NCBI GenBank assembly: GCA_907165135.1
Contig: OU015566.1
Location: forward strand, 11,036,001-11,100,000
DNA: 64,000 nucleotides
Reading direction: 5' to 3'
DNA from: Oikopleura dioica
Taxonomy: Eukaryota > Animalia > Chordata
A model generated the notes under the pieces. It was given only the letters and a program-made list of their open reading frames with translations. It ran no database searches and was not told the origin of the DNA. How positions within the stretch are numbered: position 1 is the first letter of the stretch; each line of letters begins with the position of its first letter. The position numbers and the translations under genes are program-made. Positions 8,201-40,594 of this stretch are shown here, one piece after another.

Positions 8201-11200
8201 AGCAAATTTGCAGCTTGAAATATCAGCTTTTTACGAATCCGTTGTTATGCCACTTACGCGCCAGGGAGTTAAGATTATCCATGTAAGAATTAATTCAAGA
8301 ATTTCGGTCTAGAGTGCACGTTTTTTATCAATTAGAGAGCTCGACCCTGATCGCCCGCTAATTGCACAATAAGCAGCGAGTTTTTGCTCTCCCGCTGTTA
8401 TCAAGGGCGACCCGCTGGTCTTATCACTTTTGAGTTTATCCCCCGCTGTGCTAACCGCTTGGTCATTATGTTAATTTGTACATATACTTTTCATAACGAT
8501 ACGGGGTTTGAGTTGTACAGGTGCGTTTGCTCTAGAAACGTGGCTTATGTGAATTTCATACCGAATTTTAAACCATCCAGTCCTGATACCGGCCTGTTTA
8601 AGACCTTTTTAAGATGACCGGCTTCGAGATAAAAAGTTAGGCGGCTAGATAGACAAAGAACGTGGGACGCAAAGCGGATTACTTCACGTAAACCTTTGAA
8701 GAACTATTAAAAACGGATTAAGCGTCATTCTATCGCAACCGCGCTCTCCAATATTGAGTGGAGCTGGCCACCTCTTGCGAAATCGTAAAAGATTAGCTGA
8801 GTCACTATTGTAAGCTTTTTTATAGAAGGTCTTTTTGGCGAAAAAAACGGTTGTCATGGTCGGTTTTTATACTGGTTAGCAATAATGAAACAGCGCCACC
8901 TCAGTTCGAATCAACAGCCAATCAGAAACCAGGCGGGAAGATACTCGAATCTGATTGGCTAAGAGATGCTTGCGTCGTAATAGAAACCCAAAAGATACAT
9001 GGCGGAGTTAATATAAACAATATGCTTCCGGTCGGAAGGCTTTATGGAATGATATTGAGAATGGATTTCTTCCCTTAAAGAGTTTTTCTCTTCTGAAAAT
9101 TGTGAGATTATTTACGGAGAGCGACATGTGCAAAGCTGGGAGTGGAAAACTGCAGCGATTCCTTTTTCTTTCAAAAGCTTTTCTGAATTCGCGAGATTTC
9201 TTTCAGAGTAAGAAATAAAATTTCAATGGCTTAGGAATAGTGACAAATACGTGAATATAGAAAAGTTATTTTATTAAAAATAAAAAATAGAAATGGAAAA
9301 TAGAAAAATAATAAATATAAAAGGCTTAAAAATAACGAGATCTGCATCTCACACAAAATCGTAGGTCGCGGCATGCGTATAGGACTTGTCTACAGTCCTC
9401 GCACAGGATCATCTTGCGACAACATCTTGTGACGTAAGTCGCATCTCGCGTCCAGCAGCACCAACATCGCCCCATCAATGGCCCCGGCTCGTAATTCTCC
9501 TCTTCAGAAGAAGAAGAGATTTGAATGGTCTCTTGAAATACTCGTTTCGAAGCTTGTCGGGATGCTGTGTTCGCGAAAGAGTCTTCATCTAAAAACAAAA
9601 TGTTAAGAAAATTTAGAGTTCGACGGTATACCTTCAGAGTCGCTTATTACTATAACTTGATCTCGAGAACAATGCGGTTGTTCCTCCTGTTTCTTTTTCA
9701 TCTTCTCTTTCGCAGAGTTTTTTGTTCGAGTTCGGGGCTTCTTTGGCTTCTTCAGAGTAGATTCTTTCGGTTTTCTATCTTGCTTTTTCGGAGCAGACGG
9801 TCGCACACGCATGTAATTCGTCTTCTTTGGTTTCTTCTTCGAAGGTCCATTAAGAGAAGTCGCGTCCTAGATTTTTGTATGGAATTCGTTAACGGTTTAT
9901 TTTACCTTTTCTTTTCTTTCTTTTCTAGCGTGCATCATTTGGTGCATTATTCGATTTTGTTTAGGAACATCGTTGCCACAAATTTGACAGAAGAAGAAGT
10001 CATCATCGCTTGAGTCGACCATTTGACGATTTGAAGTCAAGTAAGGATAACAAGGAAGAAGAAGAAAACGTTCTAGAGACAAATACAAACAATCGAACAA
10101 ACAACTTCCACGTCAACAACAATAATTTTTCAATGAGAAAATGAGGGAATGCATGCTAGCGGTAGACTTGAATGCGTAATGGATGCACTTGAGCCTGCGC
10201 TTTCTAGCCATGTCAATTAAAAATTGATCGGAGAGAAACTCGACGAGCTAGAGACATTTGAAACCTTATTTCCTCGAAAAATGAGAGCAATTTTAGCCTT
10301 TTCGAAAAATTGAAAACTCTCTTTGAAAAGCATGTAGTTCTTATGCTACTCAAGAAAGTACAAGAGATTTTATCCGGTACAGGTTTCGTAATTACGATTT
10401 TCGTCCGTTTTTTGCCAAATAATCGGTTGCGAAGTGGTTATTTTTACATTCGATCTCGAGAACACGGACCTAGAATTTTCAAAACAACAAATTTGAAAAC
10501 AGCAAAAACCGAGCTTTTTGGCTTTTTCTCTGAAAAAGAGATGAAATCAAATCATTAATTTAAAAATGTAATGGTATATTGCGTGCTTGGTTGAACAGTT
10601 AGATCAAGAACTTCCAAAGAAACCTCCAAAGAATCCCTTTTTCTTCGGGCTCTCTTGGACACATTCGTCTGCAAAAAGTTAAAAGATTTGTTTTACTGAA
10701 AAGTAAAAGCTTTAAATCTTTTAAACTCTTGTCAAAAGGATTCGCTGCGTTTGGGTCTTTCATTCCATACTTCGTTCTAATCGACTCGTATCTTTTCTGA
10801 CGATTTTCATCAAAATTATCTGAAAATAGAAACGAATTTTCGAATTTCACCGAGCTAACCTTCGCGGATTTTCAATCCTTTCGCGACTGCAGCTTCCTTC
10901 TTGTACTTGTCTTTCTTCTCTTCCAAGGACTTGATTTTGTCTTCTTGATTTCTGATCTTGTCTTGGAGCTTTTCGATCTTCTTCTTTTGCTCGGAGTTCT
11001 CAAGAAGAGTGTCTTCCAGCATCGTGTCCCTACAAAGCCATTTTAGCGTCGAAAGAAAAGTTTTAAAGTTTTTTTGATTTAGTCATTTAGAAGGAGAATC
11101 TTTAACTCAATCTTCTGAGTCCCTAAGTAATCAATTCCAGCCTCAATAACCTTCTCACTGAAGAGATAACTCAACCAAGGCGCCTTATTCACCACTTCCT

Positions 11201-14200
11201 GGATCTCTTCCAGCCAACTTTCAGTCAAAACAACAAATTGTTCTAGAGTCAGCGCTTTTAACTCTAACAAAAGCTCAATCGATGGTCAGGCAGCTTATTA
11301 CGGCTTTCTTCGATTTTACCTTTTGAATTAACGATTACTCATTCCAGCGGAAACTTGAGCCTCAATATCGATCGGCTTTGCGTTTTTGTACTCGCGCTCG
11401 AGTTGTCTTCTAGTTCCTCGGCACCCTTGAACTCGACCGAGCAGTTGAAACATTCACCGATGCTTTCATGGCCTAAAACAAGTTGAACATGTTTGGTAAA
11501 GTAGTAAAGCTTTAAGCTCACCAGAGTCGAAAGAATCCGAGGACATCTCTTCACTCATCTTTGTCTTCTTAGGGGATATTTCCATATCTTCCATGCTTTC
11601 ATTAATCAGCTTTTCCGACATTTGAACGCTCAATACCTTGTCCAGGAACGCAAAGAACTCTGACTTTTTAGTTGAATCTACATTCAAACTGAACTCGTTG
11701 GCAGCTTTTGTAGTGCGGGAAGAGGTAACTAAACCACAAGATTACCCAGCATCCATTCGGTTTTCGCCCGTGTCGATGAGTAACGAAATAGTCCAATCTT
11801 TGGAGTCGTGTGCTGTTGCTTTTGGTTCTCGATAAAATTTGTGACTCTCTTTGTAGGCTTCAACATCGTCACCAGTTAATTTGATTCGAGTTACTTGAAT
11901 AGAAAAACGGAAAATCTAATAGGAATGTAATATCCAGTGGAAGCTCCCTCGCATGAAACGATTATGAAACAATACATAGATTTACTGTTGAGCTAGTTCT
12001 TAACTCTGAATTTGAAGCGTTGAGTCGATTGTTAAAATTCCTCAGTCACTCCGACCATTGAATTCATTTACTATTTATGAACAAGCCTTCATTTTCCCTT
12101 TGATTGTGAAGCTTTTCAATACTTTCGAGATTTTGTGAAGAGTTTTCGCGGTAATATGGCCGGCAGTATTGTGCTCCATTTCGAATGGATCCGCAATGTT
12201 GAGAACAGCAGCTTTGAATAGTTGCTCCGTTAATTGTAGGAACTGAAGAAATCCGAAATGTTTGAATTGACATCGGATCTTATTTTGACGACAATATCAG
12301 GCTCGACTGAGCTGAGCCAATGCGAAAAAGAAAAGAGTACATGGCGATCAGAGTAGAGTAGGTCGACAATCGACCAGCTTTGCTCAGCTCACCGTGTGAA
12401 AAGATAAACTTGGTCATCTTCACTAAAACAAAAATTTTTCTTTGCCAAAAAAATGATAGCGTTCCAAGATGAAGAAAAAGATGATCTCTAAAACAGGTTT
12501 CGAAGAAACGCGTATTCACCGAAGCAGCAGTATTTCCGATGGAGATCTCAAGCTTTTTCCCGCTCAGATTCATCCGAATAACCGGCTTTCGAGCTCCAAT
12601 AACGGCATGTACACTGGAGATAGGTAGAGTCTTTGACAAGGAAACAATCTTTCCGGTGATAAAAAGAACAACGGCTGTTTGATCGCGTTCCTTGCGCGCG
12701 GAATGAGGCTCGTAGCGAACTGTCTTGCGGACAATCTCAATAAACTTCTCTTGCATTCAACACTCACTTCTTGCTTTCCTCTACTCCCAGCCTCAGACTT
12801 ACTTATACCGTAAATCGTTTCTCATGCCTCATCGCTATCTTCCCTATCTCATGAAACACTCATCCCTCTTCATTTTCAAACTTAATCGGGCGAAGAGCGC
12901 GCTTTGTTCACATTTCCAATCTGCGTTGTTTGTTTTTATTTTTTTTTTATTTTTTAGAATAAAAACTCACGCGACACTTTTGAACAAAATCGAACAGAGA
13001 TTTCCAGTTTTCAGAATACATGTAAAGATGAAAGTAGTGAGAGCGCTGGTTGGGTTTGGAGTTATTCATCTTCTTGAAGTTCTGAAAACAGTTTATTTTC
13101 GAAAAAAAAACGATCCTACCATTAATAAGTCGAGCGATGAGCATTTTTCTTTCTGGCTCCGCCCGATCTCTCGCTGTCTCCAAAAATACCAGTAATGATG
13201 GTATTTCTTGACGAGCTGGAATTAGGCTCGACAAGAAAATGGTCTCAGATTTGACCTTATTCAGGACCCTGACTCAGGTTTTCTATACAGGATGCCGAGC
13301 CCAGTCTTCGAACGCCTCGTTTATACGGGCGATGTCTGCCCTCCCGATCCTTTCCTCCCTTCGTTGTTGTAGTTGTCGTCGTCGTTGTTGTTCCTGCCAC
13401 GCCTCATAAATCGGCAACACTCGCGATTTCTTTTCAAAGTATTTAAGTTAGAATTTCATTTAAATTAAATGGAACCGACCTGCGATCCATTTTTGTTATA
13501 CTTCACTCTAAGTGTCCCCTTCTCCAAGTTCAAATCCTTGTATCCTATTATAGGATACGAGTCCCAGTTTTCAGCCCGAGGACGAGCCTCACGGAAATAA
13601 GGCCCGTACGCGTCAACGTCCACGTTGTTGGGCGCCCGCTCGCAAATTTTCAAGTGGTTCTAAAATATATAAAAGAAAATTTCAATAAATTCACCTTTTG
13701 AGACCGCGCGGCTACCACCGTCTCGCAAAAACTGCATTTGTATTTTTTCTCGGCCCAAGTTCGCATTTTTCTTCTGATTGATCATGAAGATGGGGCTCTT
13801 GAGCAGTTAAAAACAATTCTAGAAACTGGTCCGATCCCAAAAATACCTCAAAAATGGTCCCGATCCCAAAAATACCTCAGAAATCAACCCGATCCGAAAA
13901 ATACCTCTCAGAACCGGCCCGATCCCGAAAATACCTCAGAAATGGTCCCGATCCCAAAAATACCTCAGAAATCGGCCCGATCCGAAAAATACCTCTAAGA
14001 ACCGACCCGATCTCAAAAATACCTCAGAAATGGTCCCGATCCCAAAAATACCTGAGAAATCGGTCCGATCCCAAAAATACCTTCAGTGATCGGTCCGATA
14101 GCAATAAAACCTTCAAATTTTGAGTCAATTTCCGAAGATTTATTAAAATTTCAATGCAGTTGATACAGAATAAGATGTTGTAAATAAGGAATTCATTTGA

Positions 14201-17200
14201 TATTCACGAGAAAAAACCGAATTTTGCAGGTAAAATTGTGGCATTTTAAAAGAATAAAGACCCGAAGTGACAATCACAATATACTAAATGATTGAGTTTC
14301 ATTTTATCAAGAAGTAGGTAGATACGATCAATACGACAGATAAAAATACATATGTTTCATTTCAAAATCCAATTTCAAGTAATCTTCGGCTTTGAAAGCT
14401 TAACCTAAATGTCGTTTCATTTTCAATTTGTGATGAGGAATGAGAAGCTGTGACAGTTAAATTGAGGACAGTATCCAAAAGAGGGCGTTGAGAGCACGAA
14501 GGTTTCCCACTGAGAGTTTACTTCATCTTGGTTACGTAAACACTGCAGGTGAGGAGCTTAGTTAGATTGTATCCGCTCTTTCTGAAACTACTCTGATTTT
14601 CATGCTGGATTTCCACCAGTTTGGGAATATCGGACCAGTTTGGAATGTTTTCCAGGAACTCTTTTTTAGTAGACTTGTTCTTTATCAAATGTGGCTCAAT
14701 CGGGAGTCCAGTCGAAATTTGAGGCCAGTGAAATCTGTATCGAGAGTCAGGATCCTCAGTCAAAATATTCTCCATGAGAAATCCAAAATCAATTTTGATC
14801 CGAAAGACGGGTGACATCACATCGAAGATATCTTCAATGAGATTGTTCAAATCAAAATCTTTGTTTATAAGCAATCTCAAATGAGCCGTTTCGACGACTC
14901 GTCCTGGTTTAGGAGGAGGGATAATAAGCCTGTTGTGTAGCTGACCTACTCTCTCTGACTGCCTAAAGTAATCAAGCTCCTCTTCTTCAAGTGGTAGATA
15001 ACTTCCGCCGTATTCTTTACGAAGTGCTTCTAAATCTGCTCTTTCTGATGGATAAAAAGGCATTTTATAAGGAAGAAGCGAAAAAAGTTGATTTATATTC
15101 ACCCAAATTTATTCACATGGAACAGATTAAAGGATTTCGCCGTTAAGGGTCAGTGGTTTACATGTGACGCCGTCCGCCATGACTCGCAGCTTTACAAAAA
15201 TATTCGAGAGAACTTTCTTTTCGATGGAAATTCGTTTTACAATATTGTCGGTAGTCGAGCGTAACATGCGAACTTTGCATGTGTTACTACTGGTCACAGT
15301 TTCATTTAGACAATCAAGAAATTCTTGAAGTTTCAGCTCGTGATTGTGCGGAACTCCTTTCGTTGATCGCTTCGTCTGTTTATTTTCTTCATCGTAGCCA
15401 AAGTACATCTTGTTTCCAAGACAGACAAGTGCGCCATTATTCGTTTGCCATTCCGCTTTAAAAACTTGGTATCAATTCGAAACATCAGCAAACCTTTGAG
15501 AAGTCCAGGAGTTTTGTGATTAAGAGTTGTATCTTCCAGGACAATCCATTTATGCCAAACTTGTAGAAATTCGTCCATGAGTTCCTCCCGGACACAAGGT
15601 AGCAAAGCGGCTTCCATCTGTGACCTTGTTGTTTGTCCATCCGTTCCGCTTCGAGTGAACGCTAAAATATTTTTATGAGTGGCAGAAAGTATAAACTTAC
15701 ATATTGCTAAACTGTCTGTATCGCAATAGTTCAGCTTGTAGGATCCAGGTCTCAGGTATTTGTGAAGAAATTTGTAAACAAAGGAGAGAAAGTGAAGTTT
15801 TGAGTTTTGAAGAATAGCCACACCAAGAACAGTTGGTTTGTCATCTTTGATGCGTAGCTTGTCGAATATGACTTCGGAAATTTCATACTCACCGTTTTCT
15901 TGAGAGAGTGTCTCATGAGATTTAAATGTTGGCTTTATAATTGACTTTTTCAGTTGCTTATCGTTGTTAAATTTGGTATTCGGACGGTCGACCTGCTCGA
16001 TGGCTTTACCGAAACCGCCGCAATTGCCAATCGTTTTAAATGCAAGAGCAAGAGCACTGTTCTTGTCATCAAGAGCATTTACACGACCGTGAGTAATATT
16101 ATCAGCATAATCACTTAGACTCTTAGTTGCTCGAAATTGGGTGAAAGATTGAATATTAGTTATTTCTAAGCCAAGGTCAAGATAAAATTTCACTAATGTT
16201 GTCAGGAGAAACATACTCTTACCATTATATGTTTGTACGACCGTTTCTTGATCGCATTTGCTTCCGGTTTTTTCAAATTGAGCTTTCATATAAGGACTTA
16301 AATGCTCGTTTGTGATTTTCATTCGCTGGATCACTGGCGGAAAATTTATGTACGAGATTTGATCAAAGACCTCTTTCGGACAAGAAACATCCGCTACAAT
16401 AAATCCATATATCTCGTCATTTCGAATGCCGTCAAGAATGCTCTTTTCGGACTCTTTAAGTTTAAATATATGACCCCAATATTTTGAAACACGGTCGACA
16501 TAATATCTATTTCGGCGATGGATCCATTCACATTCGCGCATAATATGAACAGTCCCTTTTCGAGACAACATACGCTTTTTCTTCTCAAACTCATGGTCAG
16601 CCTGACCTGGGTTGCAATCAACGCAATATTGGTGAAAATAACAACCTAAGAACTCAAAATAGTGATGTTTTCCATCAACACAAGCGTAGCCATCAATTTT
16701 ATAATTGAGAACTTGATGCTCTCCCCTGAAATATTGATGTTCGAGTCGGACTCGCTCGCCATTAGCTTGAACCAACAAGGGACTAAATTCGTCGATGTAC
16801 GTCAGCCACTGAAGCGCAGCAAGAGAGTTATCCGTCGTCATGATCGATTTGCGGAAGACTGAATTGTCGATTTTCTGCCATCTTATACCTGATTATAATG
16901 TGAGGTCAGAAATCAAAGAAGACTTACCTGGAGTGGATGGTAGCAACATTTTTTGAGCGAAGAGGTACAAGGCATTGAAGTCGAAAAAGACTATCTTTGT
17001 GAACGGATCCCCATTTGGAGCAAACTTTGCATTTCTCGGAGCGTCTACGTCGGGTCGAAGCTCGGTGTAGCGAGAGTAGACGTTCACCAGACCACCAATT
17101 ATATTATCACGTAAGAGTTTGTGTTCTTTGTGATAATTTCGGTGGAATGAAACTATATAAATGTCATGAAAATCAACAAGAATAACTTACATGTAAGCGG

Positions 17201-20200
17201 GGAACTCTTCGAGTAACCTTCGAAAACACACGCCATCGCAAATTTAGGCAAGCTCATACAGAAAGAAGGGTCAATTTTGAAAGTCTCGAAGAATAATTTG
17301 AACTGATTGTCAATTGCTTTCGCAAAAGGTGTGACATCTGCCAAATTGTAGTGTTTGAGCCAATGACCCATAGAGTAATTTGGATCGCGTCTTTGATTTC
17401 TATAAAACTCCGCTCTGAAAATTTCATAGTCTTCTTCTGAGATTTCCTTATTCTTGAGACTAGAAAAAAATTCTTCTCTTGGAGGGAAATTTTTATCGTT
17501 CATGATATCAAAGACGCTACGATATTTTTCATAAGGCCAAATCGCTTTTCTTTCCTCGACTCCTCCTTGCTTGAGATATCCAGCCAAATCAGTTGGAGTG
17601 CTGAATAGTTTGGCATCCTTGAATTGATATGTTGGCGTTGACATTGAAAAATAATGAGTGCCTTTTTTTATACTAGTGAATTTTGATCCATACTTTTTCA
17701 TAAGAATGGGTATAAGGTAGGGACTTAAAACTTTCAAATCAAATTTAGCACTATTGAAACCGAAAATGTCCATTTTCGCGTAGTTTGTTAGCTCTCGTCG
17801 AAGATATCGAACTTTCATCTTTCGCTCAGCATTGACTAGAAACTGGTCAGCAATATTCATGTTTCAAAATTACCTGAGTTGATATCGATGTTTTCGAGAC
17901 TCTGGATTGCATCTTTTAGCTCTGAAGGAAGATACGTTTCTTCAGAGACAGCAAGGTCTTCAATTTCGTCGACAAATTTTTGAACAAGTTGTTTGGCTGC
18001 ATCATTTTCATCACTTCGCCTTATCAAGAATCGCTGGTATCCAAAATTACTCCCGATTGCGATGGAAAGAAGTCGAAGCTCAGAATGAACAGTTGTTGAC
18101 TTGGTGGTTTCCTCAATCGGTCTCTCCATTGTTTCGATGTCAAACGTAACTAGATTTTCGAATTTTCAAAAAATTTCAAAATAAAGCTTACCGAATCTTG
18201 TCTTTCTGAATTTTCTCATCTCAGAAGACAGGAAACCAGCTTGAATTGCCTCCTCGATCGGGTTTATTGAGACTCCGTAAGCCCGCTGGGTTGGAGTAAT
18301 TTTTTTGACATTAACCTTACATTTCAAATCATGTTTTTTATACAACGTCTCAAAATATGTTTCAAATCCACATTTCGGGTTCAAACATTTGTAAACTGTT
18401 GCTAAATTATTCATGTTGAAAATATATCTCAGATTTAGCGCGTTTTCGGACATAAGCTCGTCTTTATCGACAATAAAATTGAGAGTTCGGGTGGAGTCTT
18501 CGGTTCGAAATGTTTGCAAGAGCTCCAATTTGACTAGTGAACGCTGGTCAGGTAGATGAGATGTGCCTAAACAGAAAAAATTCGTCTCCGCATTCATTTT
18601 TTTCGCATATTTTGACAATTCTTTCGAAAAGACTCGATCCGGTCCATCAAATAAACTCAATCCCTGAACCTTAAACGAAAAATCATTTATGTTCTCGAGT
18701 CGGCCTTTTTTGTCCAATTTACTGAGAAAAATGTCGAGAGAATAAAGGTAAAAATATGAATCACCTTCTTCAACAAATTTATGGGACTTTTTAACGACCA
18801 CATCATCAACTAAAACAAGTTTTATCGATTTTTTACTTTTAGACTTTACTTTAACGATTTCAAGTTTATAAAAGTCCAAAATATGTTCCGTGGCAAGAGA
18901 AGAGTGCGCTAATGATAAATTGTAAATATGCGAAATGAACTGTCGATTAGCTAATTTTCCGTCCTTGAAAAGTTTGCTGTAATCCTCTGCGAATCGCTGA
19001 AGCTCTCCAAGAGTTATCCATGGATTTAACCCAGGAAAAAAGAGATTATACCTTTTCATACTTGAGACTTGACGTCCACTCTCTTTATAACAACGTTGAC
19101 TTGCGCCACCAGCTCAACCAAACTCTAAAAAGACAATTTTGCGCCACCAGCTCAACCAAACTCGATTTCGCGATACTTGCTTATTTCCTGCAAATAAACA
19201 AAACAAAATTATGTCTCTAGAAATCTATTGAATTTCAACTGAGTAGAATGAAACAAGCATGAAAACAGGGTAACCAGTTTGGATAGAAACGGCCAGTTCG
19301 TAGCCCTGTCGTCGCAGGCGGGACCGGCGGCGTGGAGTTCGATCAACAAGGAGAACAGCGGAGTCGACGACAGCAAGAGTGAAATTTTCTTGTTGTGCGA
19401 TGCGGGTGCAAAGCCGTCCGTCCAGGTCGTTAAACTCGTCGCTACCAATAACGACGTCCATCGTATAGGGATGTAGAGCTCCAAGTCTAAATCGGACAAG
19501 CTGGAGAACGCCATCATCGTTCTTGACGCAGAAATAACCTTTGTAGCTGGTCAGCCAAGGCTGTGTCTCAGCAGCGGTGTAGATCAATTCCAGAAAAAAG
19601 CGTAGCTGAGGAATGGGGTGTGTTCGAGCCGTTTCCATCCGAAAGTCAAGGTCAGGCTGATCGTTACCGGGTTGCTCAACTTCCAGATCGCTATCAGAAT
19701 CCATCTTCTTAATCTTTCTCGATTTTCGGACTAAGTCTTTGAGCTTTTCGAAAAAAAGTTTTGCTGTCTTCTTTTCCTTCAGCTCAGCCTTTTTATTTTC
19801 AACTCAATTTCTAGCGCCTCGAATTCTGAAAAGCGCGCCGCGAGTCTGAGCGCCATCGGGGAAATGAGATAAATCCGGGATCAGGGTGAATTGTGAGTAT
19901 AATTGATAATGTCAACTATTGACTATCAATTAAAACCCCTCCCAGAGACTGAAATTGTTCTTTTTTGTCTCGGCTGCGACAGAAAAAATACAGACAACTA
20001 CCAAGTCGATTATCTGGAGCCCGATGATGACATAGAAGACAAAGCTTTTAGCGTTTGGCTTGTATGCGAATTCTGCGCGAAGGAAATAACAATCGCCTTT
20101 ACTCCTGAGGAATGGAACCTTTTCGCCAGTCAGGCTGACAAACAAGAAGACCAATACTTTTCGAGAGTTTCAGCAGTCGCATTTTGCAAAACCTATTTGC

Positions 20201-23200
20201 TTTCGGATTGCTACGGTGACTTGTTTATCAAAGCTCAACAACGAAAAATGGCTCGACGAGAAATTAACAAAGATGAAGAAAAGAATTGTATCTTTTGCCA
20301 TGAAGATGATGTCAAAATGGTATGTCTTCCGATTTTCAGCATTCTTCTAATTATTTTAAGATTTCTAGTCCCTGCAAGCATTTTTATTGTGAAAAATGCT
20401 ATGCGAAACATCGCGAAATATCTCCACGAAAAGACGACTGTGCTTTCTGCAGAATTCCATTTCAATACACCCGATTCTCCGACATTGTCGCTGAAAAAAG
20501 GAGAAACGACTAAAAGATCTTTTCGCTTTCACTTTTCTGTCCATGTGCACCTAGGCAATCTGTTTTCAATAAAAGAAAGTGCATGAAATTGAAGGTGCGT
20601 GTAATTTGCAGGTGACATATGACCTTAGTGAGGCGCTAGAACTCAAGCTCTGATATAAGCGAAGGTTTGAAACAAGAATCATCAAAAATAGAAATAAGTC
20701 TTTTTCGAAATGGAAATCAACAATCAAAACGAGTTGGCCCCTTCTTATGATGACGTTCTGAATGAAGAATATGAGGCCCAGCAGCGAGAAAATGAATTTG
20801 CATTATTTCAAATCCCCGGCTTAAAACGAAAAATGAAGAAATTTGCAAGAAAAAGCGTCACAGTTCCATGGCTCTACGACTACAGAGGATATATTATTGT
20901 CGGACGGTCTGAGAATGGTACTGTCCAGTTGTTGCAGTTTTTGGAAGGACTGCAAAATTCGCGCATGATGACAGCGACGATCGGGTCAGATGCCGACATC
21001 GACATTTCTGGGACGCCAGTTTTTGCAATGGGATCGCTGCCAGATGCTCGACAAATGAATATCGTCAGTGTTGACGACTTCATTGCAATCACCGACGATA
21101 GGCTTTTCCAAACAATGGAGCTTGAGAATCAAGGAACTCAGCTTGCGATTAAAATGGACGACGACGGAGAACTTCATTACCACATGGTACGAATCTACTC
21201 AATTACTCTGTAACTCTTTCACTACTGTTTATTCTCGATTGTTGAGAATTTTTCCTGCTCTTTCATTTTCTTTCTTTGTTTTGACTCATGCAAACAATCT
21301 TTATTGAAATAAAAGTCCTTTTTTCACTGCAATAACTGTTTATTTTTCTTTTGAGGCAAAGTGGATGGGCAGTCAATATTTTTTAAGGCTGTGATTGATG
21401 GACAGGGTAGTCGGTTGTTTTCGTTGGCGAACTGCTCGAGCTAGAATGTTTGTTAGTTCAATTTCCTTTTCTTGTGTTTTTCTACCTTGCTGCTCAACGG
21501 ATGGCTGGGCGCGAGTGTTTGTTGACGCGGGTGTGGACGTTCGAACTGAAGCGTTCCACGGAGGTCGGCAGGCGATTTGTGATGCTTTCGGTTGGGACAA
21601 GCGAGCGGAAGATTTTTTTTGTGCGGAAGCGGAAGGAAGTGCGCGTGCGGTAGTTTGAATGCGAGGAGTAGTCATATTTCGTGATGTGGAAGATGTTCCA
21701 GCGAGAGAGATTGGCGTAGAGTTGCATGCTGCGGAAGTTTGCGAGGTAGTTCCAGTCGAAGACGCAGCAGAAGCATTTGCTCGTGGACCGGTCGTGGAGA
21801 GGTCAATTGGTAAGTCGAAGGAGTTGTCCCACTCAAGTTCAGGCACGCCAGTCTGAGTTTGCGCTAAAAATAAGAATTATTATGAGCTGGTTCGAAAAAA
21901 TATCTCAAACCTTGTGGTTGCTGGGAGATCGTTTGCTGAGAAGAAGGACGCAGAGCTTCTTGTCGATGAGCTTCTTGTTGGGTAGCGCTGGAATGCTGTG
22001 CTTCTGGTTGATGAGTAGCAGGTCTTGTTGAGGTTTTCACGACGACGATGGCTGAATAATAATGTCAATAACACGATAGCAAATTATATTTATTTTGTAT
22101 GAAATCAAATACCTTGAATAATAAGACGAAAGACGAAATAAAGCCAGATGAGGATGATTACAATTATCGCAACTTCTTTAGAAAAGAACTTGATTAAACA
22201 GTCTTTACTTGGCTCAAAAAATTGTCTAATAAAGATTCTAATAGATTTTTGAACCCTTATCCTGAGTACGAGACACAAAAAATCATGTCTCTATCGCCGT
22301 CGTTTCCCTGAGGACTTGTTGTCGTTTCCAGACCTGTTGGCATCGTTGGTTTAGGCGACATCGTTGTTGGTGGTCTTCGACCCATCATTCTTTTGTCTCT
22401 CTCTTAAAATTAAAAGAAAATAAACTTTTAGAGAGTGTCCTTTTTAGCAGATATGAAGAACTTGGAAGAAAGGCACACGATCGAAGCGCTGGCAGATAGT
22501 CAGATGAGTAGAAACGCTGGTAACTTGGAGGATTGAAAGGATGGCACACGGTAGAAGCGCTGGCGGACGGAAGAGATGAGTGGAAGCGCTGGCAACTAGG
22601 AAGAAGGCACACAGGAGGCTGAAGATGATATCAGACTGATTGTTTATGATTTTGGAAGCTTACATGAGTTATTGAGGTCTAGATGTCTTCTGGAAGATGA
22701 GTAGGTCGTGAGATGAGCAGGTCTGTGTTAAGTTTTAGTAAAATGGTTTGATTGATTTGGATGACTTACTTCGCTTTGGAGTGGCTGGCTTCTTTTTGGT
22801 GATCAAAGCAATGAGAATTACCATCAGAAGAAAGCAAGCTCCGACAGCGGACAAGCTTGCGATCTGGAGAATGGAGTCCACGTCGACTTTTTCTTCCATC
22901 GACTCTTGAGAAAATAAGTAAAGTATATTCTCTTGTGATCTCTAAGTTACCTCGACAGGCACAGAGGGCGCCAACTTCTTCTTCAGAAACGTAATCGAAT
23001 CTGTATTGAGCGTAAAAGTCGCAGTTTTCCATGATTCGAGGTTCAGTCTTAGAATTGAAAGAAAATTAGAAGTTTCTCTATTCCGTCAATTATCGTTCTA
23101 ATCAACAATTAAATTTCTTTCTTGTCCTAAACTTCTTCTATCCGGGATTGGTCTTCCTTCTTCTTTGCTCGCCAGAGACGATTCAATCGCATCCAGTCCG

Positions 23201-26200
23201 GTCCAGGAGTCCAATTCTCATCTTTCTTCTTCTTTGTCGATTCGTCGTTCTTTGAACCCTCATTTTTGACATCAGGCTTCTTCTCTTTTGTCTGTATCTC
23301 TTCTTCGCTTCTGTTATCTTTGTAAAATTATTAGTTTGAGTCAAATTGTCTAAGATTACCTTTGGGATCTTTCCTTTCTCGAGAAAAAGTCGATCTGCGG
23401 CAGTCTGTGATTGATCTCCTTACTCGCATTTCGTATTTCTTGTAAATCATGAAGAAAAACCAAAGCGTAGAAGTAACTGCCGCTAGAAATTATATTTAAA
23501 TATTTGGAATTGATAATTAAATGTTCTTCATTACCTGTAAAAACGGCTTGTTTCAACCAATTGGTTGCTTCAATTGGGTCCGCTTGATTGCTCACAGTTG
23601 TTAACTCGGTGACCAGCTCACAAGGGGAGAGAGAGGATGTGCTCGTCTTTGTGATCGGAATTTTTGTCGAAGCAATTTCTCCTCCGGAGAGCTTTACGCG
23701 AAATCGAGTCATCTGAATTTCAAAAATAATATATCTCGATAAGCTAGAAATAATTAAAAAAAACACTTGAAGATTCAAAAAATTGGAGTTGAAAGCAGAA
23801 TAAGAGATTTTAATCAGAAAGAAACTTTTGATTATAGATAGCCGTAAACGACTAGGTTTCTTATAAGTAATATAATTGAAAATTCAAGCTGATTTCTCTT
23901 AGTTTTCTCTTATCTTCAATATTTTTCTCTGTTTTCGAATTCTATTAAAAGTCTTGTGCATGAACTTGCAGCGAGCGAAGTGTGTGCTTGAAATGAGCGT
24001 GCCCCTGAGCAGGCGCCTCACTGATTCGCCCGTTCAACCCCCGCCCGCGAGAACCTAGCCTGAGAGAGGCGCGCTCACCGCAGGTCTAGCCACGCTGGCG
24101 CCAAAAAAAAAGCGCAATCAAAGCAGAATGAGAGAATTCAAATCCGAGCGCCCCTTGACCTCGTGGGAGCGCGCGACCATCAAAGTCGCTATCGACGCAA
24201 ATCTCGACTCAGTTTCCGACCTTATCAAAGGTATTTTACTCCTTGGAATTTCATAAGCTCATCATTTTTTAGCAAAGAAAGAATACGAAAAGGATGTGAA
24301 CTTAGCCACGCGAATGATGTTGAAGATGAAAATTACCGACGAAGCAATGGAAGTTGAAACTCGATCCTTTCTTTTGGAATTCATCAAAGGTAGTTTTACT
24401 TCCGGCTTTAATGAATTAATGACTTTTCTAGCAGAAGAATTCAAGAAGGACGTCGAAAAAGCAACGAAAATGATGAAGCAGATGACGATAAGCGAAGGAA
24501 CAATGGAATGGACGAGTCTTCCTGAGAAAATGGAGATCGATAGCGAGGACGAAACTATGGAATACGATCAGATGGACGCGATGGAAGAGTAATTTATTCA
24601 CAGATAACTCCACCTTTTGATTGATAAAGCCTTATTGAAAACTTTCTTTTATTGATAGAAACTCTTTGATAGATAAATTCTCATTGATAATGTATTTCTA
24701 CCGTCTCAAAACTAGCCATGACTGATAACCTGCCTTTTATCCCACTTCAAGTGCCAAATTTTGTTCAAGCTTCAAATTTTTGCGCTCTATTTCGCAACAG
24801 TTCCAAATCTAACCTGCCGATAATAACTGACAAAATAAAACTCGTAAAATATCAATCCATTGTGTTTTATTAAACATCTGCAGGAGATAGAGCAAATCAA
24901 ACCCAAGAATCTTGAGGAGACAAAGCAGGATCAGAATCAGTAACAACGATCGAGGCTCTCTTCGCAGTCGATTTCTTCTTTGCTTTCATCTTCCAAATCT
25001 TAATTACCATCCAGCAGTAACCAGCAAGCGCGAGTACAACTAGGGTTGTAGCAGCTTTGTTCTGTCTGATAATTTCTTCCTTGATTTTGCAAATCAAGTC
25101 GAGAAAAGTAAATTCATCTGAGACTGGTGCGCTGCGATTCATTTTTTAAGAATGATATTTTCGAGCTATCAAGCTTATTTTTATGCCCTAGATCAATGCT
25201 TCAAACCAGTGCTAGGAAAAACAACGGAAGTTCACCAAAGCATGTTTATTGAAAGAAATAATCACCGGAAGTTAACAGTAAGTAAACAGTAAGTAAACAG
25301 GAAAGTTTGCTAAGAGGAAGAAATTTAAAGTTCGGTAAAGGTTTTTTCTGGCGTCACGTTGGCGGGAGGATCTTCTTCGTCTTCCATCATCTCGGCGGTT
25401 TCATCGATGAATTCAGCAGTTTCTCGCGTGATCAGTCCCATTGAGAGTGCTGTATCCAGGGTCTCCCCTAAAAGGTACGGCGATAAACAGGCATCGATTA
25501 TGGTATCAGGAGTACCTCCTCTTGACGGATTCTCCAGCTCCGATTGCAGCTGTCGGATTTCTTCTGCTCTCGCTTGCGCGTCGTTTTCATCGACGATCTG
25601 CTGGAATTGTTCGGCGTCCAAGGAGCCAAAGGTTTCATCAGCGTACGCAATGTCGATTGCTAAATTATTGTTAGACAAGGATTTAAAAATTCAAACTACC
25701 TGGGACAACTTGATCATCCTCGTCAGAGGAAGAATCTCCGGTCAAATCAACTTGATTAAAGTTAACATAAGCTTCAATAAAAAAGATTTACTTGTTGTGA
25801 TTGCTGAAGCCATCATTTGTTGAATGGTAATTGGTCGGAATTCGGGAACCGTAGGTGATCGAATAACAGATGACCGTCCAGCCGGAGAAGGAAACTCAAA
25901 TGGTGAAGGACGAGGAGAGTCAAATGGAGGAGGCGTCGGCGGTGGCGTGTACATCGAAGCTCGGCTTGTGGAAGGTTGGCACATGTCCCAGGTCGTTTGG
26001 GTCCAGAGTTGATTTTTTTGCGATTTTGGTCGAGCCGCCCATTCTTCCTCGCTATCCGGTCCAGTCTCAGCTCCGCTATCATCGTTGTTTTCATCAGCGT
26101 CGTTTTCCTCAGCTGCGACACCCACTCCAGCTATACCGTTATCTTCAGCAGCGATAACCTCTCTCGCAGCGTCAGCCTCGTCGTTGATCTCAGCGTCATT

Positions 26201-29200
26201 ATCGCTTCCAATGTCAGTTTCATCATCATCTTCAAGCTGATCAAACTGGTCGACATTCTGTCGTTTTTGTTCTGGCTCATCAGTTTCGAATAATTTTCGT
26301 TTGACAGCTAAAAAACCAGTTCTGAAATCGCTTAAAAATAAATTTTACCTCTCGTTTTTTGTGGAGTTGTTGGATGGTAGGTTTCCTCATCATCTTCAAG
26401 CTGATCAACCTGGTCGACTTTCTGTCGTTTTTGTTTCGGCTCATCAGTTTCGAATAATTTTCGTTTGCCAGCTAAAAAACCAGTTCTGAAATTGCTTTAA
26501 AAATAAATTTTACCTCTCGTTTTTGGTGGAGTTGTTGGATAGTAGGTTTCATCATCAGAATCATCTTCGGAGGAGGATGCTGCGCTGGAATCGTCAATGT
26601 CAATTTCACCGTCAGAATTCTCAATCATCTCTTCAAGCCTTGACACAAGGGGCACGTCAAAGTCCAAATGGTCGAGAAGTCCACCTTAATATAGATAAGT
26701 TTTTGAAATGACTCAAGAATAACTTACGAACTCGTCGAAGATAGGTCTCTTTATCGACCTCCATTATGTATTGGTCTCTGATCGTGGGCCAAAGTGCTGC
26801 GAGAAGGAGTGTAAATTGGTTGGTAAGGTTGTAAGCTTGAGCAATGCCGTCGGGATTCGAGGGAAGATCGAACATCTTTTAATATCAAATTTTGATATCT
26901 GATGAAATTCCCTAATCTTATTCCGGTTTTATCGACGGGATCAGTGCGCTTACAACTTGCGCCGCACTCGTTCGCGTGCGCCGCCCCTTCCGCCGGAAGT
27001 AAACTTATCAAAATACAATCCTTCTTCCACGCACAAATGTTTTAATCCGGAGGAACAAACGAATTGACATTCAAATTTTGAAGTCAATTTTCATTTCAAA
27101 AACTTGCATGATCTCAATTATACCTTTAGAAACTGGTCCGATCCCAAAAATACCACTCAGAAATGAGCCCGATCCGAAAAATACCTCTCAGAACCGGCCC
27201 GATCCCAAAAATACCTAAGAAATGGGCCCGATCCGAAAAATACCTCTCAGAACCGGCCCGATCCCAAAAATACCTTCAGAAATCGACCCGATCCCAAAAA
27301 TACCTAAGAAATGGACCTGATCCGAAAAATACCTCTCAGAACCGGCCCGATCCCAAAAATACCTTCAGAAATCGACCCGATCCCAAAAATACCTAAGAAA
27401 TGGACCCGATCCGAAAAATACCTCTCAGAACCGGCCCGATCCCAAAAATACCTAAGAAATGGACCCGATCCGAAAAATACCTCTCAGAACCGGCCCGATC
27501 CCAAAAATACCTTCAGAAATCCGCCCGATCCAAAAAATACCTAAGAAATGGGCCCGATCCGAAAAATACCTCTCAGAACCGGCCCGATCCCAAAAATACC
27601 TTCAGAAATCCGCCCGATCCCAAAAAAATCGATGGTCTTTTCGGTCGGAAATCGGTCGGAAAATCTGAGAGTGTAAATTTGAGCTCGTTAGTCAAAATTG
27701 AAGACCAAAAAAGCTGAAATATCAATTTTTCTTTAATAGTTTTTATTCACACCGACACATAATGGAGCAGAAATTAGAAGTAAACGAAGCAGGTAAGACA
27801 GATTTGTTGACACCGACATGAAATGGAGTAGAAATTTTGAGTTAACGAAGAAGGAAAGACAGATTTATTTATGCGGAAGTTCCGGAGCGTGGCGGTGGAG
27901 CAACAACTTGATTGTCTCCGTCAATGTAAATCGTTCCTGTTTGCTCGGACTGCGTTATAACATCATCGTCAGGGGTCGTACCCAAGTTCCATCCAAGAAT
28001 TGATGTTGATTTGAAGACATTTTCTTGACCGCAAACGGGACAGTCATGAGATGGCTCTTTTTCAGGTTGAAACGGCGAAGCGTACCGGAAAATGTACGCT
28101 TTTGGCTCATTTCTAATCTGTTCAGACAGTGTCTGAAGAGCCTCGCGTTCGATCTCGACCAGAAGTTCCTTCTTAGTGTGGCGAAACTCGAGCAGATGAA
28201 GGAACTCAACCTCGAGTTCATGTTTAGCTCGAATAGGCAGACGGAGCTCAATCTCTTCTCCTGAGAATCCATCAGGGAAGAATTTATCTGCATTTGAGAT
28301 CACTGTTGCGTCAATGTAGAAAACTCCTCCTTTGTTAGCGGTGTGAAAATCAAAATCTTTAATTGTAACGATCATTTTTTGCGAATGAGAGAAGAATCAA
28401 TTTTGCTCCAGAAGTTCAAATGCACTGGCTTACCAGTGTTCTTTTTCTAGCCTTGTGACCGCCTTTACGCTTCCTATGCTTATAAACAAAAGATCCTGCT
28501 TCAAAGAACAACAAAAAGATTTATCACCTACATTTATTTTCACCGAAAAATATTTACAAGCAAAGCACCACAGTATGAAAGTAAAGAAAAGCAAGCGTCA
28601 CAGTTTATCTAAGAAAGAAAAGCAAAGCACCACAAGAAAAGACAGTTTCATTTGAAGATTCAATGATTATACTTTGTCACCTTCCATTCTTTCAGCTTGA
28701 ATATTGGTGATCCACAATTTGAACAATCCTCTGGAGAAGTCTGCTCGAGTTGCATCGGGAAGTTGTATTTAAACGTCCAGCAACCATAAATTGCTTCCGA
28801 TTTTTTTCCCTCGGAAGTGACCACTTTTTCAAGAAGAATTATTGGCACGGGCTTTTTTGAGTGGCGAAATTCCAAAAGCTGAAGGAATTCCGTCTCAACC
28901 TCTTGTTTTGTCGAGACTGTTATCCGAAGATCAAGCTCTGCTGCTGGGAATCCACCAGGAAAGTGAACGTCGATAAGCGGCATGCACATGGCATCAATGT
29001 AAAAAACTCCTCCACAACCTTTATGCTCAAAGTCGAAGGCTTCAATTTGAACCATATAATCAGCTGAGGAAACTTCGATACAACGAAACATTATTTTTTG
29101 ATGAGAATGAGATCAACTATAAATTCTTCTATGAGGTTCAAAAGCGCTGGATACTCGGTGCCTGCTTTGGATCACTGATTCTACTCGAGCGAAACTTTGC

Positions 29201-32200
29201 GTCTTCAATGTTTATAAATAAAGGAACCTGCTCGAAAGAACGACAAAGAAATAAAAAAAAAACACCAAAGTTTATTACTCGAGTAAAGAAGGAGAAAACG
29301 ATCAGAAAACGAAAAGATTAGATGGACATTGGTTGTTCGGAAGTCGCCTGAATTGGAGTTGACTGAATCGGAGTTGCAGGGTGGCTATTTTGGATTTGGG
29401 GGTTAGTTGGAATTGGATTGGATCCAATCCAATAAGGTTTGGATGGAATTTGGATGGCCAGGGTACCGGATTTTGTTGGGGAAAATTGGGCAATTGGGGG
29501 AAATTGGGGAATTGGATCCAATGAAAATACATCGCTAAACTATGCAAAGAAGGGTCATTTTCATGATAAAAATGAACAATTTCGGATAAAAAATCATTGT
29601 CTTGGCTATGTTGATCCTCTTTTCGGATAAAAACTTACTGTTTCGCTTCTTTTCAAAGTACTAAAAGCCTTGGAAAAATTGGAAATCCAATTGGATCTAA
29701 TTGGAATTGGGGATTTTTGGGGAATCGGGTAATAATTGGATTGGGTTGGATTTTGGATGGATAGTTCCGACTCAAAATTTATTGGATGGAAATTGGATGG
29801 CCAGACCCCAAAATTTTGTCCAAAATAGCCACCCTGGGAGTTGACTGGATTGGAGATGGCTGGATGGGAGATGGCTGAATTGGAGTTGACTGAATCGGAG
29901 TTGACTGGATCGGAGATGGCTGGATGGGAGATGGCTGCATCGGAGTTGGCTGGATTGGTGTTGGCTGGATTGGTGTTGGCTGGATTGGTGTTGGCTGGAT
30001 TGGTGTTGGCTGGATAGGTGTTGGCTGAATTGGAGTTGACTGCATTGGAGTTGACTGATTCGGAAGTCGACTAAATCGGAAAGTGTAGGAAGCGGGGATA
30101 TTGTGCTCTCTTTCCCAGTCGGATTGCTTTGACTCGGAAGTAAGGTTGACGGACGCAGGTTGATGAGATTCTGTGAAGGACAGAAGAGTAGCGAACGTTT
30201 CAGAAACTTCAGCGGCAGTCTTTTCAAACATTCTCAAGTTGATTTCTGTAGCAGGTTGAGTGTAGTCGAAATGAGTCTCAAAGCCTGGGATATAAGATCC
30301 CTTGACTTTGAAAAATCCGCCTCCGTTGTGTGATCGAAAAGTGAAAGATTTAATCGTGACAAACATCTTTTTGAGAATGACGAAAATGACAAAATCAAGT
30401 CCAGAAGTGCTAAAGCACTGGTTAGTCAGTGCATCTTTTATAACCAGTGATTATTTTATGTTTACCTTTACAATAAAGTTTTTTCGACTTGTTTATGTTC
30501 GTCGATCGTAAGTTTGACAGATACAATCGACCATATAACAATATGATAGTCATCGTCGTCATCAAGGGGTTTGTTGAAATCGAATGTGAAGGAGAGCCAT
30601 CCTTGTGATATTTCCTCGCCTTCAAATTCATGAGCAAAAATTGCATTGCTCTTGTACGCATCCATGGATGTCACATAAGACAAGTTGCTTTGAGAGATTC
30701 TTCCAAGAGCATTTTGAAATTTCCAATAAGGGAGAATTGGATACTGATTCGTGATTTTCTAGGAATATGATAAATTTTTTTATTCTTTTATGTTATCTTA
30801 CCTGAGGATAACCATGAAGCGACTGTCCATTTAATGTAACGTTTATTTGAGTAAGATCCTGATGAAAACTAAAATTTGTGGACTCAAACGCATCCGATCC
30901 AAACAAGGCATCTGTTTTGATGAGACCAAAGAACATGTACGCGGGAGTATTTCCACCAGTAACATTGAGCAGCTGTACTTGCTTACGTCCTTTGGGTAAA
31001 GCCATTGTTTTTATCATTGTGTCATTAAATTTGTAGGAGATCGGTTTCGATTTGATTCTCGCAAAATGATTTCTCAAGCTTGGAGAGGACACATATTCAA
31101 CCATTGCATAGGCATCTGTTATTTTGAGAGCTTCTCCAGCCGGCAACTTATTATTTGGGTCGCTTCCAATAAAAATTGTAGAGAACTCATGCTTTAAACG
31201 GTAGAGCGTCAGTGATAGATCAGTGTTGAGAGGAAGAGGTTTATTTTCAAGGAAGAATCCGTGAGTAGGTAAGAAGATGAGTTCGTAAACATAATTCCCA
31301 TCAGAGTTGACAAAGCAGCCTGGTCTCCTACCGTCTCTGATTTCTTCCTTAGCCGCATCAGTTGCAAGTGTCTCAAAATTGTACTCGTCGTAGTACCCCT
31401 CGATCTGGAAAGCAGTCATCACATATTGAGGATCATAGTTTGTCAGCTTTGTCAGATAATCAGCGAGCATATAATGTGCGCTAAGATTACAGTTAGCCTT
31501 ATTTATGAACAGAAACTCTTACTTTGAATTGGAGTTATCAATTATTTGAGAATTCACGGCAACTTCTGTTTTTCCAAATTGTTTGCTTGCGAATCCATTG
31601 CAGGGGATGTAGTTCTTGTCCAGTTCGATCGTAAAATGAATCGCAATGTTGTTTTTGACGAGAAAAAGATTTGGATCCGCATCGAAGTGGAAATGAAGAC
31701 GACCGGTCAAACTATCTACCTCTCTTGGATAGTGACGCTTGACGACTTTCTGGTCGTAATACTCAACTTCTATCATAATTTCAGTCTAAATGGATAAAAT
31801 TTGAAGATCGTTTTCACCAATTTTAATCACCAAATATGAGAGAGTTTATCAAAAAGAAGTTGATCGTTTTCAGAAAGATTTTTAGAAAAGATAGAGGAGA
31901 GTTTTTTCAGAGAATAAAGGGAGCGAAAGATAACATAAAAACAAACGTAGAAACCACAGTAAAATGACGCATCTGACTGAATTCTTTTATAAAAATATCT
32001 TTTTCGATCACCAAAAAAGTCGGTTAACTCTTTTGGATATTTTCCTAGTTTCAAACTATCAAAAATCTCGATTTTTGACTTTTCAATACGAAGTGCTATC
32101 CAGTGAGAACCTTTTGACTTTTCTGGTGAAAGATTAACAACTAGAAAAGCAGGATATTCATTAAGAGAAGGTAATGTATCAATAGAGAAAACACCAAGAA

Positions 32201-38829: not shown

Positions 38830-40594
38830 GGTTGACCTTGACTATTTCCCACAAGGCTAGACTAGAATTTCTAGTGCTTCCAAAATGAACCGAAGGATTA
38901 GGTTACAGAAAATTTAAAAACATACAGCAGCAACCAATACCAATGAACAAACAAATAAATTAGAATGATCAATTCAAAACTTATTTTATTTGCATCAAAT
39001 TTGACAAAAAAGACGAAGTTTACTATAATTAAGAATTTGCTGAAGAAGTGAGGTCGATTATTCTAGAGTTCACATTGTTCTGACGCCTCACACTGGTGAT
39101 TTTATTTGGTGTTGATTTACGAATGGGTACTTTTTTCTGAGATCGAATTATCTTAGGAAAGGTCGGTTTCTTGCTACTTGCGGATCTCATTCTACAAAAA
39201 ATCGAAGTGAAAATTCTGAAGAACAAACGGAGTTGTGAAAGAGTATAGAAGTATCTGAGTCTTTCTGATTTTCCCAATTTATTGAAAGTTGATGCAATGT
39301 TTTCAATATTCTGCCCGTACTCGTACTGCATACTGTGATATACTGGATTCAGTGTTCATTTAAAAGTTCCTTGTTTTTTCAAAGTTCATGGTAGTCAGTT
39401 CAGTTAATATTCTGTCTTCACCATCATGTATTTATAGACCTGGTAGATTCAGTCTTCATTGTTCCTTGCTTTCGCCTTGTACTTTTTTCCAGAGTAGCTT
39501 CAGTTTCCAGTATTACCTCAAGATTAAAACTTATCGTTCATAGAACAATCTAGTATTACCTTTTAAGTTCCTTTCAGTTTAAAATTTCCGTTTCCGATAA
39601 CCTGGTTCCGTTTGTACCGTTTTTCCTTAGTTCAGCAAATTATTCCTTTTTTTTTACTCTTTTATCCGCCCTCCCTCCTCAGATTATTTGAGTCAGGAGC
39701 TTGGATTTTATGCCCAAATACAAAGAGACAGTCTGTTATCTTAGCACCCGGCATGTCAATTAACAGTATTGAGGCACTACTTGCATCTAAGCACTTAATT
39801 TTAATCTAAACCGGCTGCTATAATCATCTGTTCTGGTATTTACATAAATACCCCGCCGTTCTGTAATTCGCATAAAATCAAACAAGCAAGAAAAACGGAA
39901 GCGGAAGAAGCCGTCGTTAGCTCCAGGAAGTTAAAGGCTTTTATAATGCGTTTAAATTTAAAGCTAAGGTCCAGCGCGCTCCAATTTCCGGAAATGGAGA
40001 GCGCTCGTAAAATCGGAACTAGGCATCAAACGCGGCGCAAAACTGCTCAAATACTCGTCAGCCTGTCTAATCTCTCGCCAAGGTCGACACCATCTGCTTC
40101 TGGAGCCACTTGAAAAAGTTCAGCCAAAAATTCAAGAATTCAAGCAGCAATGTGAAGGTCTCCTCTTCGCCGACAGTTTTTGGACAAGTGGCGGAAATCC
40201 ACGCTTCCGAAGAGCAGCCAAATGAGGCTGCAATTTTCGCATTTGCCAAGATGACAGTAACTTGCTTATTACCGGATACGAGAAAAACGCAGGAAATAGA
40301 CGCAGAGGAGTTTCAATAATAGATGGACTTAGTTATAATTTCGTCGCTAAATTTGTTCAATTTCGTCGATTATCCTCTCAAAAATTGTCAAATACTATGT
40401 TAGACGCAGAGGTCAAGAATAGTCTGAGAGACCGTAAATATAATATTTTTATTCTGAGTTTCACTTTATGTATTTTAACAGAAATGATCGCCAATCGAAA
40501 TGTGTTAACGGTACTTGATCGTAAGGTCGGCATCAAAGGTCTTTACGAAGAAAAATAGGAACATGTGAATGAAAACAGGGAACTACTCAAAAAG

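Follow-up and report, generated by a model that had tools for sequence, protein, structure and literature searches.

The SUMO-targeted ubiquitin ligases (STUbLs) of cells, of which RNF4 and RNF111/Arkadia serve here for comparison, combine SUMO-interacting motifs (SIMs), described as a core of Val, Ile or Leu flanked by acidic residues, with a RING whose ligands are seven Cys and one His (PMC8161396). Herpesvirus ICP0 is a viral RING protein with SIM-like sequences that possibly counters SUMO-dependent repression (PMC3174244). The accessory genes of adintoviruses/Polintons are small, poorly conserved, motif-built, zinc-binding open reading frames (ORFs) (PMC8502044), and nematode Mavericks carry variable, intron-bearing genes beside a terminus (10.1101/2022.07.12.499685). 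Nothing else in the animal Polintons (adintoviruses) is understood as poorly as these genes. Here we present a gene with likenesses to all of these systems. It encodes 204 amino acids in three exons on the minus strand (9326-10022) of a 64,000-nucleotide stretch of the Oikopleura dioica genome (GenBank assembly GCA_907165135.1, contig OU015566.1, positions 11,036,001 to 11,100,000; "the window" in what follows), near one end of a Polinton/Maverick element. An earlier note on this DNA had described its product as an element-encoded, ICP0/RNF4-like STUbL with an N-terminal zinc finger, two SIMs and a RING. We find that the gene is real and that it lies inside a Polinton; from its motifs, a SUMO-targeted ubiquitin ligase is plausible.

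Like the cellular STUbLs, the 204-aa protein is small with a predicted disordered N-terminal part, and it has a SIM-type motif with a V/I/L core and an acidic flank, basic stretches, and a RING-like domain at the extreme C-terminus (PMC8161396). The likeness to ICP0 (PMC3174244) is in concept only, that of a RING protein of a virus or mobile DNA whose SIM-like sequences may work against SUMO-dependent repression. With the adintovirus accessory genes it shares its small size, its poor conservation and its make-up of motifs, the putative zinc-binding ones included, and with the nematode genes its introns and its place beside a terminus. In the literature searched, the combination of a SIM with a RING-like domain is not reported for adintovirus/Polinton accessory genes, no paper joins Polintons with RING, STUbL or SUMO functions, and no Polinton is described in this genome, whose assembly paper (PMC8008620) does not mention them.

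A spliced gene inside a Polinton

The annotated counterpart of the gene is CAG5106732.1 (P0001 in our searches; gene model g2976.t1, 204 aa) on chr1 of the O. dioica OKI2018_I69 assembly, which was annotated by AUGUSTUS with RNA-seq hints and has a median intron length of 49 nt (PMC8008620). We recovered this protein with exon 3 as the query of a phmmer search run exhaustively over 1.84 billion representatives, and used it as the full-length query from there on. In tblastn it matches all three exons in the window, and the aligner leaves a gap only across intron 1. The spliced model of the earlier note is thus identical to an independent annotation, an agreement that is not proof of this gene's expression. 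Unspliced translation of either intron 1 or intron 2 runs into a stop, so that only the splicing of both brings the finger, the SIM-type motif and the Cys cluster together on one protein. The codon of D118 is split by intron 2 within the acidic flank of the SIM-type motif, and the flank is complete only across the intron, as had been noted before.

The 26,151-bp element has an inverted repeat that ends abruptly at both outer ends and is directly flanked there by the perfect 6-bp sequence TGCTTG. Target-site duplications of 6 bp are reportedly those of the Polinton class. Among its genes is that of the protein-primed DNA polymerase B (pPolB), with an ORF (15333..16841) that matches PF03175-carrying proteins at E ~1e-100. 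The ~700 polymerase codons compared with relatives are interrupted three times, by two changes of frame and by a single in-frame stop, and no other stops or frameshifts are found in them. Each interruption coincides with 38-39 nt that intron-less relatives do not have and that allow GT..AG boundaries, and one of them recurs in two O. dioica paralogues, in their spliced models. We read the three as short introns and not as breaks. Further minus-strand ORFs up to position 19704 may also be part of pPolB. The integrase has a Pfam rve match above the cut-off (E 3.3e-10) and matches foamy-virus and Ty3 integrase chains in the PDB (E 6e-5). Because pPolB and a retrovirus-like integrase are the two genes by which a passage of PMC5499653 defines Polintons, the element is, judged by its gene content, a genuine Polinton. 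An LTR (long terminal repeat) retrotransposon as the source of the integrase is ruled out by pPolB, the A32-type ATPase, the terminal inverted repeats and the 6-bp target-site duplication. For a jelly-roll capsid and an adenain-type protease we find no Pfam or PHROG match in the ORFs tried. The element is well bounded and apparently little decayed.

The 204-aa gene has its stop codon 353 nt inward of the element's left terminus; it is downstream of pPolB and is transcribed toward that terminus. For this copy of the element, the description of the gene as element-encoded is supported. Table 1 collects the coordinates.

Table 1. Positions of the gene, its parts and the Polinton features, in window coordinates (TIR, terminal inverted repeat; TSD, target-site duplication)
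Feature	Position	Strand	Remarks
Whole three-exon gene	9326..10022	-	O. dioica g2976.t1 / P0001
Exon 1, residues 1-39 (39 codons)	9906..10022	-	finger encoded at 9930-9989
Intron 1, 39 nt, GT..AG	9867..9905	-	in frame but with stops; junction matches annotated protein
Exon 2, residues 40-117 + 1 nt (78 codons + 1 nt)	9632..9866	-	K/R-rich linker with NLS-like clusters (nuclear localization signal), then VIVISDSE
Intron 2, 43 nt, GT..AG	9589..9631	-	D118 codon split, within SIM acidic flank
Exon 3, residues 118-204 + stop	9326..9588	-	reading frame; query of the exhaustive search
SIM-type motif VIVI (110-113) + SDSEDEDS (114-121)	9578..9656	-	strict regex; intron 2 included
Weaker SIM-like tract, residues 139-148	9497..9526	-	I-x-I-S + Ser/Glu tract; fails strict SIM core
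Cys-rich RING-like region, C159-C199	9344..9466	-	7 canonical Cys positions; fold not confirmed
Candidate poly(A) signal AATAAA	9270..9275	-	putative; ~50 nt past stop, inside element
Polinton/Maverick, 26,151 bp	8973..35123	.	TIRs, TSD, pPolB, ATPase, integrase
Left TIR, 65 nt	8973..9037	+	67 aligned columns, 84%, E 8e-12
Right TIR, 65 nt	35059..35123	-	pairs with left TIR
TSD TGCTTG, left	8967..8972	+	
TSD TGCTTG, right	35124..35129	+	
pPolB, part comparable with relatives	15130..17752	-	three interruptions, all intron-like
Packaging ATPase ORF, 434 aa, uninterrupted	33612..34916	-	relatives carry PF04665 Pox_A32
Retrovirus-type integrase ORF, uninterrupted	32771..34096	-	rve core 33269-33529

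SIM-type motif, RING-like tail and finger

The strongest motif of the protein is the string VIVI with its flank, in which 8/8 residues are D, E or S. In 0.2% of protein shuffles a V/I/L core of four residues arises with six or more of eight such residues alongside, and the string fits the published description of a SIM (PMC8161396). Two of the eight CK2-type (casein kinase 2) sites of the protein fall in it, at S114 and S116.

The C-terminal tail has ten Cys in residues 159-199, seven of them in RING register, and Cys 161, 173 and 190 are spare. The 7-Cys RING spacing occurs in 0.2% of exon 3 shuffles. In the six-frame translation of the whole window it is found at 3 places, compared with 0 in shuffled windows, and the two other places are antisense to a host gene with EGF (epidermal growth factor) repeats. 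For both the SIM-type string and the 7-Cys spacing, chance is an unlikely explanation. In Pfam, zf-C3HC4_3 is the sole family that aligns to the tail, over profile positions 4-44 of 49, and all PDB sequence matches of the tail are RINGs, none of them strong: arenavirus Z at E 0.039, and cIAP1 and cIAP2 at E 0.3-1. The likeness to the arenavirus Z RING is non-significant and driven by Cys and Trp, and we do not retain it. Arg200 follows directly after the last Cys, and the protein ends five residues after that Cys in Tyr-Phe. Active, dimeric RINGs of the RNF4 and IAP (inhibitor of apoptosis) kind are characterized by a basic residue right behind the last Cys and by a C-terminal tail that is aromatic, and we take the resemblance as a lead.

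Residues 12-31 form a C12-x2-C15-x11-H27-x3-H31 finger. In an AlphaFold2 model from the single sequence, residues ~9-40 adopt a beta-beta-alpha fold (strands 9-12 and 17-20, helix from residue 21) with a score in the predicted local distance difference test (pLDDT) of 85-90, so that the zinc finger of the earlier note is borne out. Its assignment to the ubiquitin-binding UBZ type of Pol eta is another matter. Superposed on the UBZ of Pol eta (2i5o), the model reaches a template-modelling (TM) score, by target, of 0.81 and a root-mean-square deviation of 1.1 A over 32 columns, and the UBZ domains of RAD18 and NDP52 are also among the fold matches; like the finger, these are single beta-beta-alpha fingers, a type with C2H2 or C2HC ligands. 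All of the fold matches have E>3, however, and classical C2H2 fingers are intermixed with them. By sequence, exon 1 has a C2H2-type Pfam match below the cut-off (E 4.8e-4), alignments with classical C2H2 fingers open a gap of one residue in the query, whose spacing is shorter by one than theirs, and no UBZ family or chain is among the Pfam or PDB sequence matches of the finger. A UBZ and an ordinary C2H2 finger are indistinguishable here. Between the finger and the SIM-type motif, linker residues 32-103 are rich in Lys and Arg (29 K+R, isoelectric point 10.8), include several NLS-like clusters, and are predicted by AlphaFold2 to be disordered.

A possible STUbL-like protein and its alternatives

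Our best reading, a tentative one, is that the gene may encode a small protein of the nucleus in which the VIVI/acidic motif binds SUMO-modified partners and an atypical RING recruits an E2, and that it would be STUbL-like by convergence. It would be an accessory gene of an integrated O. dioica Polinton, spliced twice, whose product is probably nuclear to judge from the basic, NLS-like linker. The product would dock on SUMO-modified proteins by its VIVI and Ser/Asp/Glu motif, a contact that phosphorylation of Ser in the CK2-type sites could strengthen, and the atypical C-terminal RING-like zinc domain would then recruit ubiquitin-loaded E2. A further contact, with either ubiquitin or nucleic acid, would come from the N-terminal finger. 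The general layout, with the SIM upstream and the RING at the extreme C-terminus, would be that of RNF4, arisen independently of it.

Several results weigh against this proposal. The strict SIM regex finds one core only, whereas cellular STUbLs have a cluster and RNF4 relies on several: of the two SIMs in the earlier note the first holds, and the second fails the strict core at IQIS (residue 139). Where STUbL RINGs have seven Cys and one His (PMC8161396), the tail fills 7/8 of the ligand positions and has Lys176 at the His position, a departure that the earlier note had itself pointed out. The zf-C3HC4_3 match is well below the Pfam threshold (13.4-14.9 bits against a cut-off of 27; E 0.071 with exon 3 and E 0.024 with the last 64 aa). 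A structure prediction for the RING had been suggested as a check; in AlphaFold2 the Cys region has a pLDDT of 30-45 both in the whole protein and alone. Because these models were run without an alignment, we regard the RING fold as unconfirmed rather than refuted.

Nor do the searches connect the protein with a known STUbL. No RNF4-, RNF111/Arkadia- or ICP0-type protein is found in PDB sequence searches (E<=10) or in PDB fold or viral fold searches, the viral fold library giving nothing significant. Slx5/8 homology is likewise absent from the PDB sequence (E<=10) and fold searches, and the exhaustive phmmer search finds no such relative. The cellular STUbLs differ from the 204-aa protein in having no detectable sequence or fold relationship to it, as well as in lacking its extra N-terminal zinc finger. 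ICP0 is far larger, with its RING at the N-terminus, unlike the layout found here. The part of the STUbL claim that holds up is the strong SIM-type motif; several SIMs, and homology to RNF4, RNF111 or ICP0, do not.

The protein is moreover an orphan in our protein searches, which were exhaustive over all lengths for exon 3 and word-indexed for the full-length P0001; for exons 1 and 2 they were separate Pfam searches, with a PDB search in addition for exon 1. The word-indexed search (E<=10) returns P0001 itself only, on one contig. The exhaustive search returns two matches, P0001 itself and P0002. The latter is a bacterial surface protein with HYR repeats, in which 15 weak repeat matches sum up, and we reject it as a relative. 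Across 1.84 billion representatives and 5.8 billion clusters, the protein thus matches nothing but itself. NCBIfam and PHROGs give nothing useful, and tblastn finds no second copy of the gene in the window. No paralogue is annotated even though the same genome has at least four further annotated fragments of this family of elements, and because of this we consider it doubtful that the gene is a regular member of the family's gene set.

It is conceivable, though rather unlikely, that the gene encodes a real accessory protein that is not a STUbL. The protein would be a motif-built zinc hub like the 'Oncoid' genes of adintoviruses, or the remnant of an IAP-type RING; its SIM-like stretch would be one acidic or phospho-serine tract among others, and its Cys cluster a structural or non-catalytic zinc module. 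Adintoviruses are reported to have small ORFs with CK2 sites and paired CXXC, and also IAP homologues (PMC8502044), and P0001 has its eight CK2-type sites together with several C-x2-C pairs. The one RING family that aligns to the tail is of the IAP/MDM2 type, the cIAP RINGs are among the weak PDB matches, and both the absent His and the low AlphaFold2 confidence fit a non-canonical zinc module. Against this, P0001 has no strict form of the LXCXE motif, which in Oncoids is described beside a CK2 site and paired CXXC. Pfam finds in it no BIR, the domain that IAPs combine with a C-terminal zf-C3HC4_3 RING, and no other IAP domain, and the RING match is sub-threshold. The position differs as well, with the gene downstream of pPolB at the terminus and the Oncoids described upstream. 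Finally, an acidic tract of the ordinary kind is much weaker than VIVI with its wholly D/E/S flank.

Another explanation, to which we give a similarly low credence, is that the gene model is non-functional, a young or decaying ORF predicted by AUGUSTUS in the variable terminal region of one copy, with motifs that are real but unselected. This would agree with an orphan that matches only itself on one contig, and with the lack of an annotated paralogue when polymerase and ATPase fragments of other copies are annotated. It would also agree with the absent RING ligand, with the low AlphaFold2 confidence in the C-terminal half, and with the fact that an RNA-seq-hinted prediction does not prove this gene's expression (PMC8008620). 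What such an ORF would not lead one to expect is three in-phase exons with canonical GT-AG introns of host-typical size, an AATAAA ~50 nt after the stop, or a finger that AlphaFold2 folds confidently from a single sequence. The finger, the SIM-type motif and the 7-Cys spacing, each rare by chance, also occur on one strand within 700 nt.

That the gene is host DNA, whole or in fragment, captured as cargo by this copy and without an element function is very unlikely: the ends of nematode Mavericks do hold variable, intron-bearing cargo genes of host origin (bioRxiv 10.1101/2022.07.12.499685), and this gene is terminal, intron-bearing and not seen with other copies, but no host paralogue or homologue appears in the annotated O. 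dioica proteome or elsewhere in the searches, and its introns (39 and 43 nt) are no mark of foreign origin because the intron-like insertions in the element's own polymerase (38-39 nt) fall in the same size class.

Returning to the possible STUbL-like protein, its boldest form is a chordate Polinton with a STUbL of its own, independent of RNF4 and ICP0, that would rid the DNA of the element of repressive proteins marked by SUMO. We consider this form unlikely, and the role of anti-silencing effector that the earlier note assigned to the protein is pure inference. If true, SUMO-directed counter-silencing would have come up repeatedly among the DNA elements of the nucleus, far outside the herpesviruses too. 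If SUMO recognition is coupled to the RING, the protein would have converged with ICP0 and RNF4, and SUMO-dependent repression would be indicated as a means by which the host controls Polintons in a chordate with a very compact genome. The present value of the locus is more modest: a well-bounded Polinton whose polymerase has intron-like insertions and whose terminal gene is unique.

Other copies, repeats and neighbours

The other annotated fragments of the element family in the same genome are chr1 g24 (98% identical to the ATPase), XSR g16267, PAR g13071 and PAR g12434, and the older O. dioica entry Q66S36_OIKDI is also related to the family. The arms of the terminal inverted repeat are only 84% identical, in contrast with the 98% identity of another copy's ATPase. 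A protein from a JGI metagenome (P0003), 60% identical to the polymerase, aligns through a 39-nt intron-like insertion, unlike the other relatives. This suggests that its contig derives from a copy in a related larvacean genome rather than from a free virus.

Several tandem repeats lie inside the element. The same 29/59/89-nt repeat forms two arrays (13807-14142 and 27116-27631), in direct orientation and 13.1 kb apart, which flank the polymerase together with a gene-poor stretch (~21-27 kb). They could mark a nested or rearranged segment, or be internal repeats of the element. A 15-nt repeat in ~15 copies (29837-30057) falls within the element's minus-strand ORF 29779..30366, where it gives a repetitive, low-complexity protein segment, and a 21-nt repeat present three times (35017-35081) overlaps the inner edge of the right terminal inverted repeat.

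Rfam and tRNA scans of the window are empty. They include no match for a large hairpin at 51032-51752, which has 318-nt arms that are 96% complementary and a loop of 85 nt. The host gene whose antisense strand gives the window's only other RING-like Cys spacings is a plus-strand ORF of 562 aa (54561-56249) with calcium-binding EGF repeats. A unit of ~2.6 kb (40593-43223), probably a second DNA transposon and a young one, encloses a 471-aa minus-strand ORF (41214..42629) with no Pfam match between inverted ends of 430 nt that are 99% alike. A nested set of short repeats, some inverted and some direct, at 45813-47326 is possibly an element like a miniature inverted-repeat transposable element (MITE).

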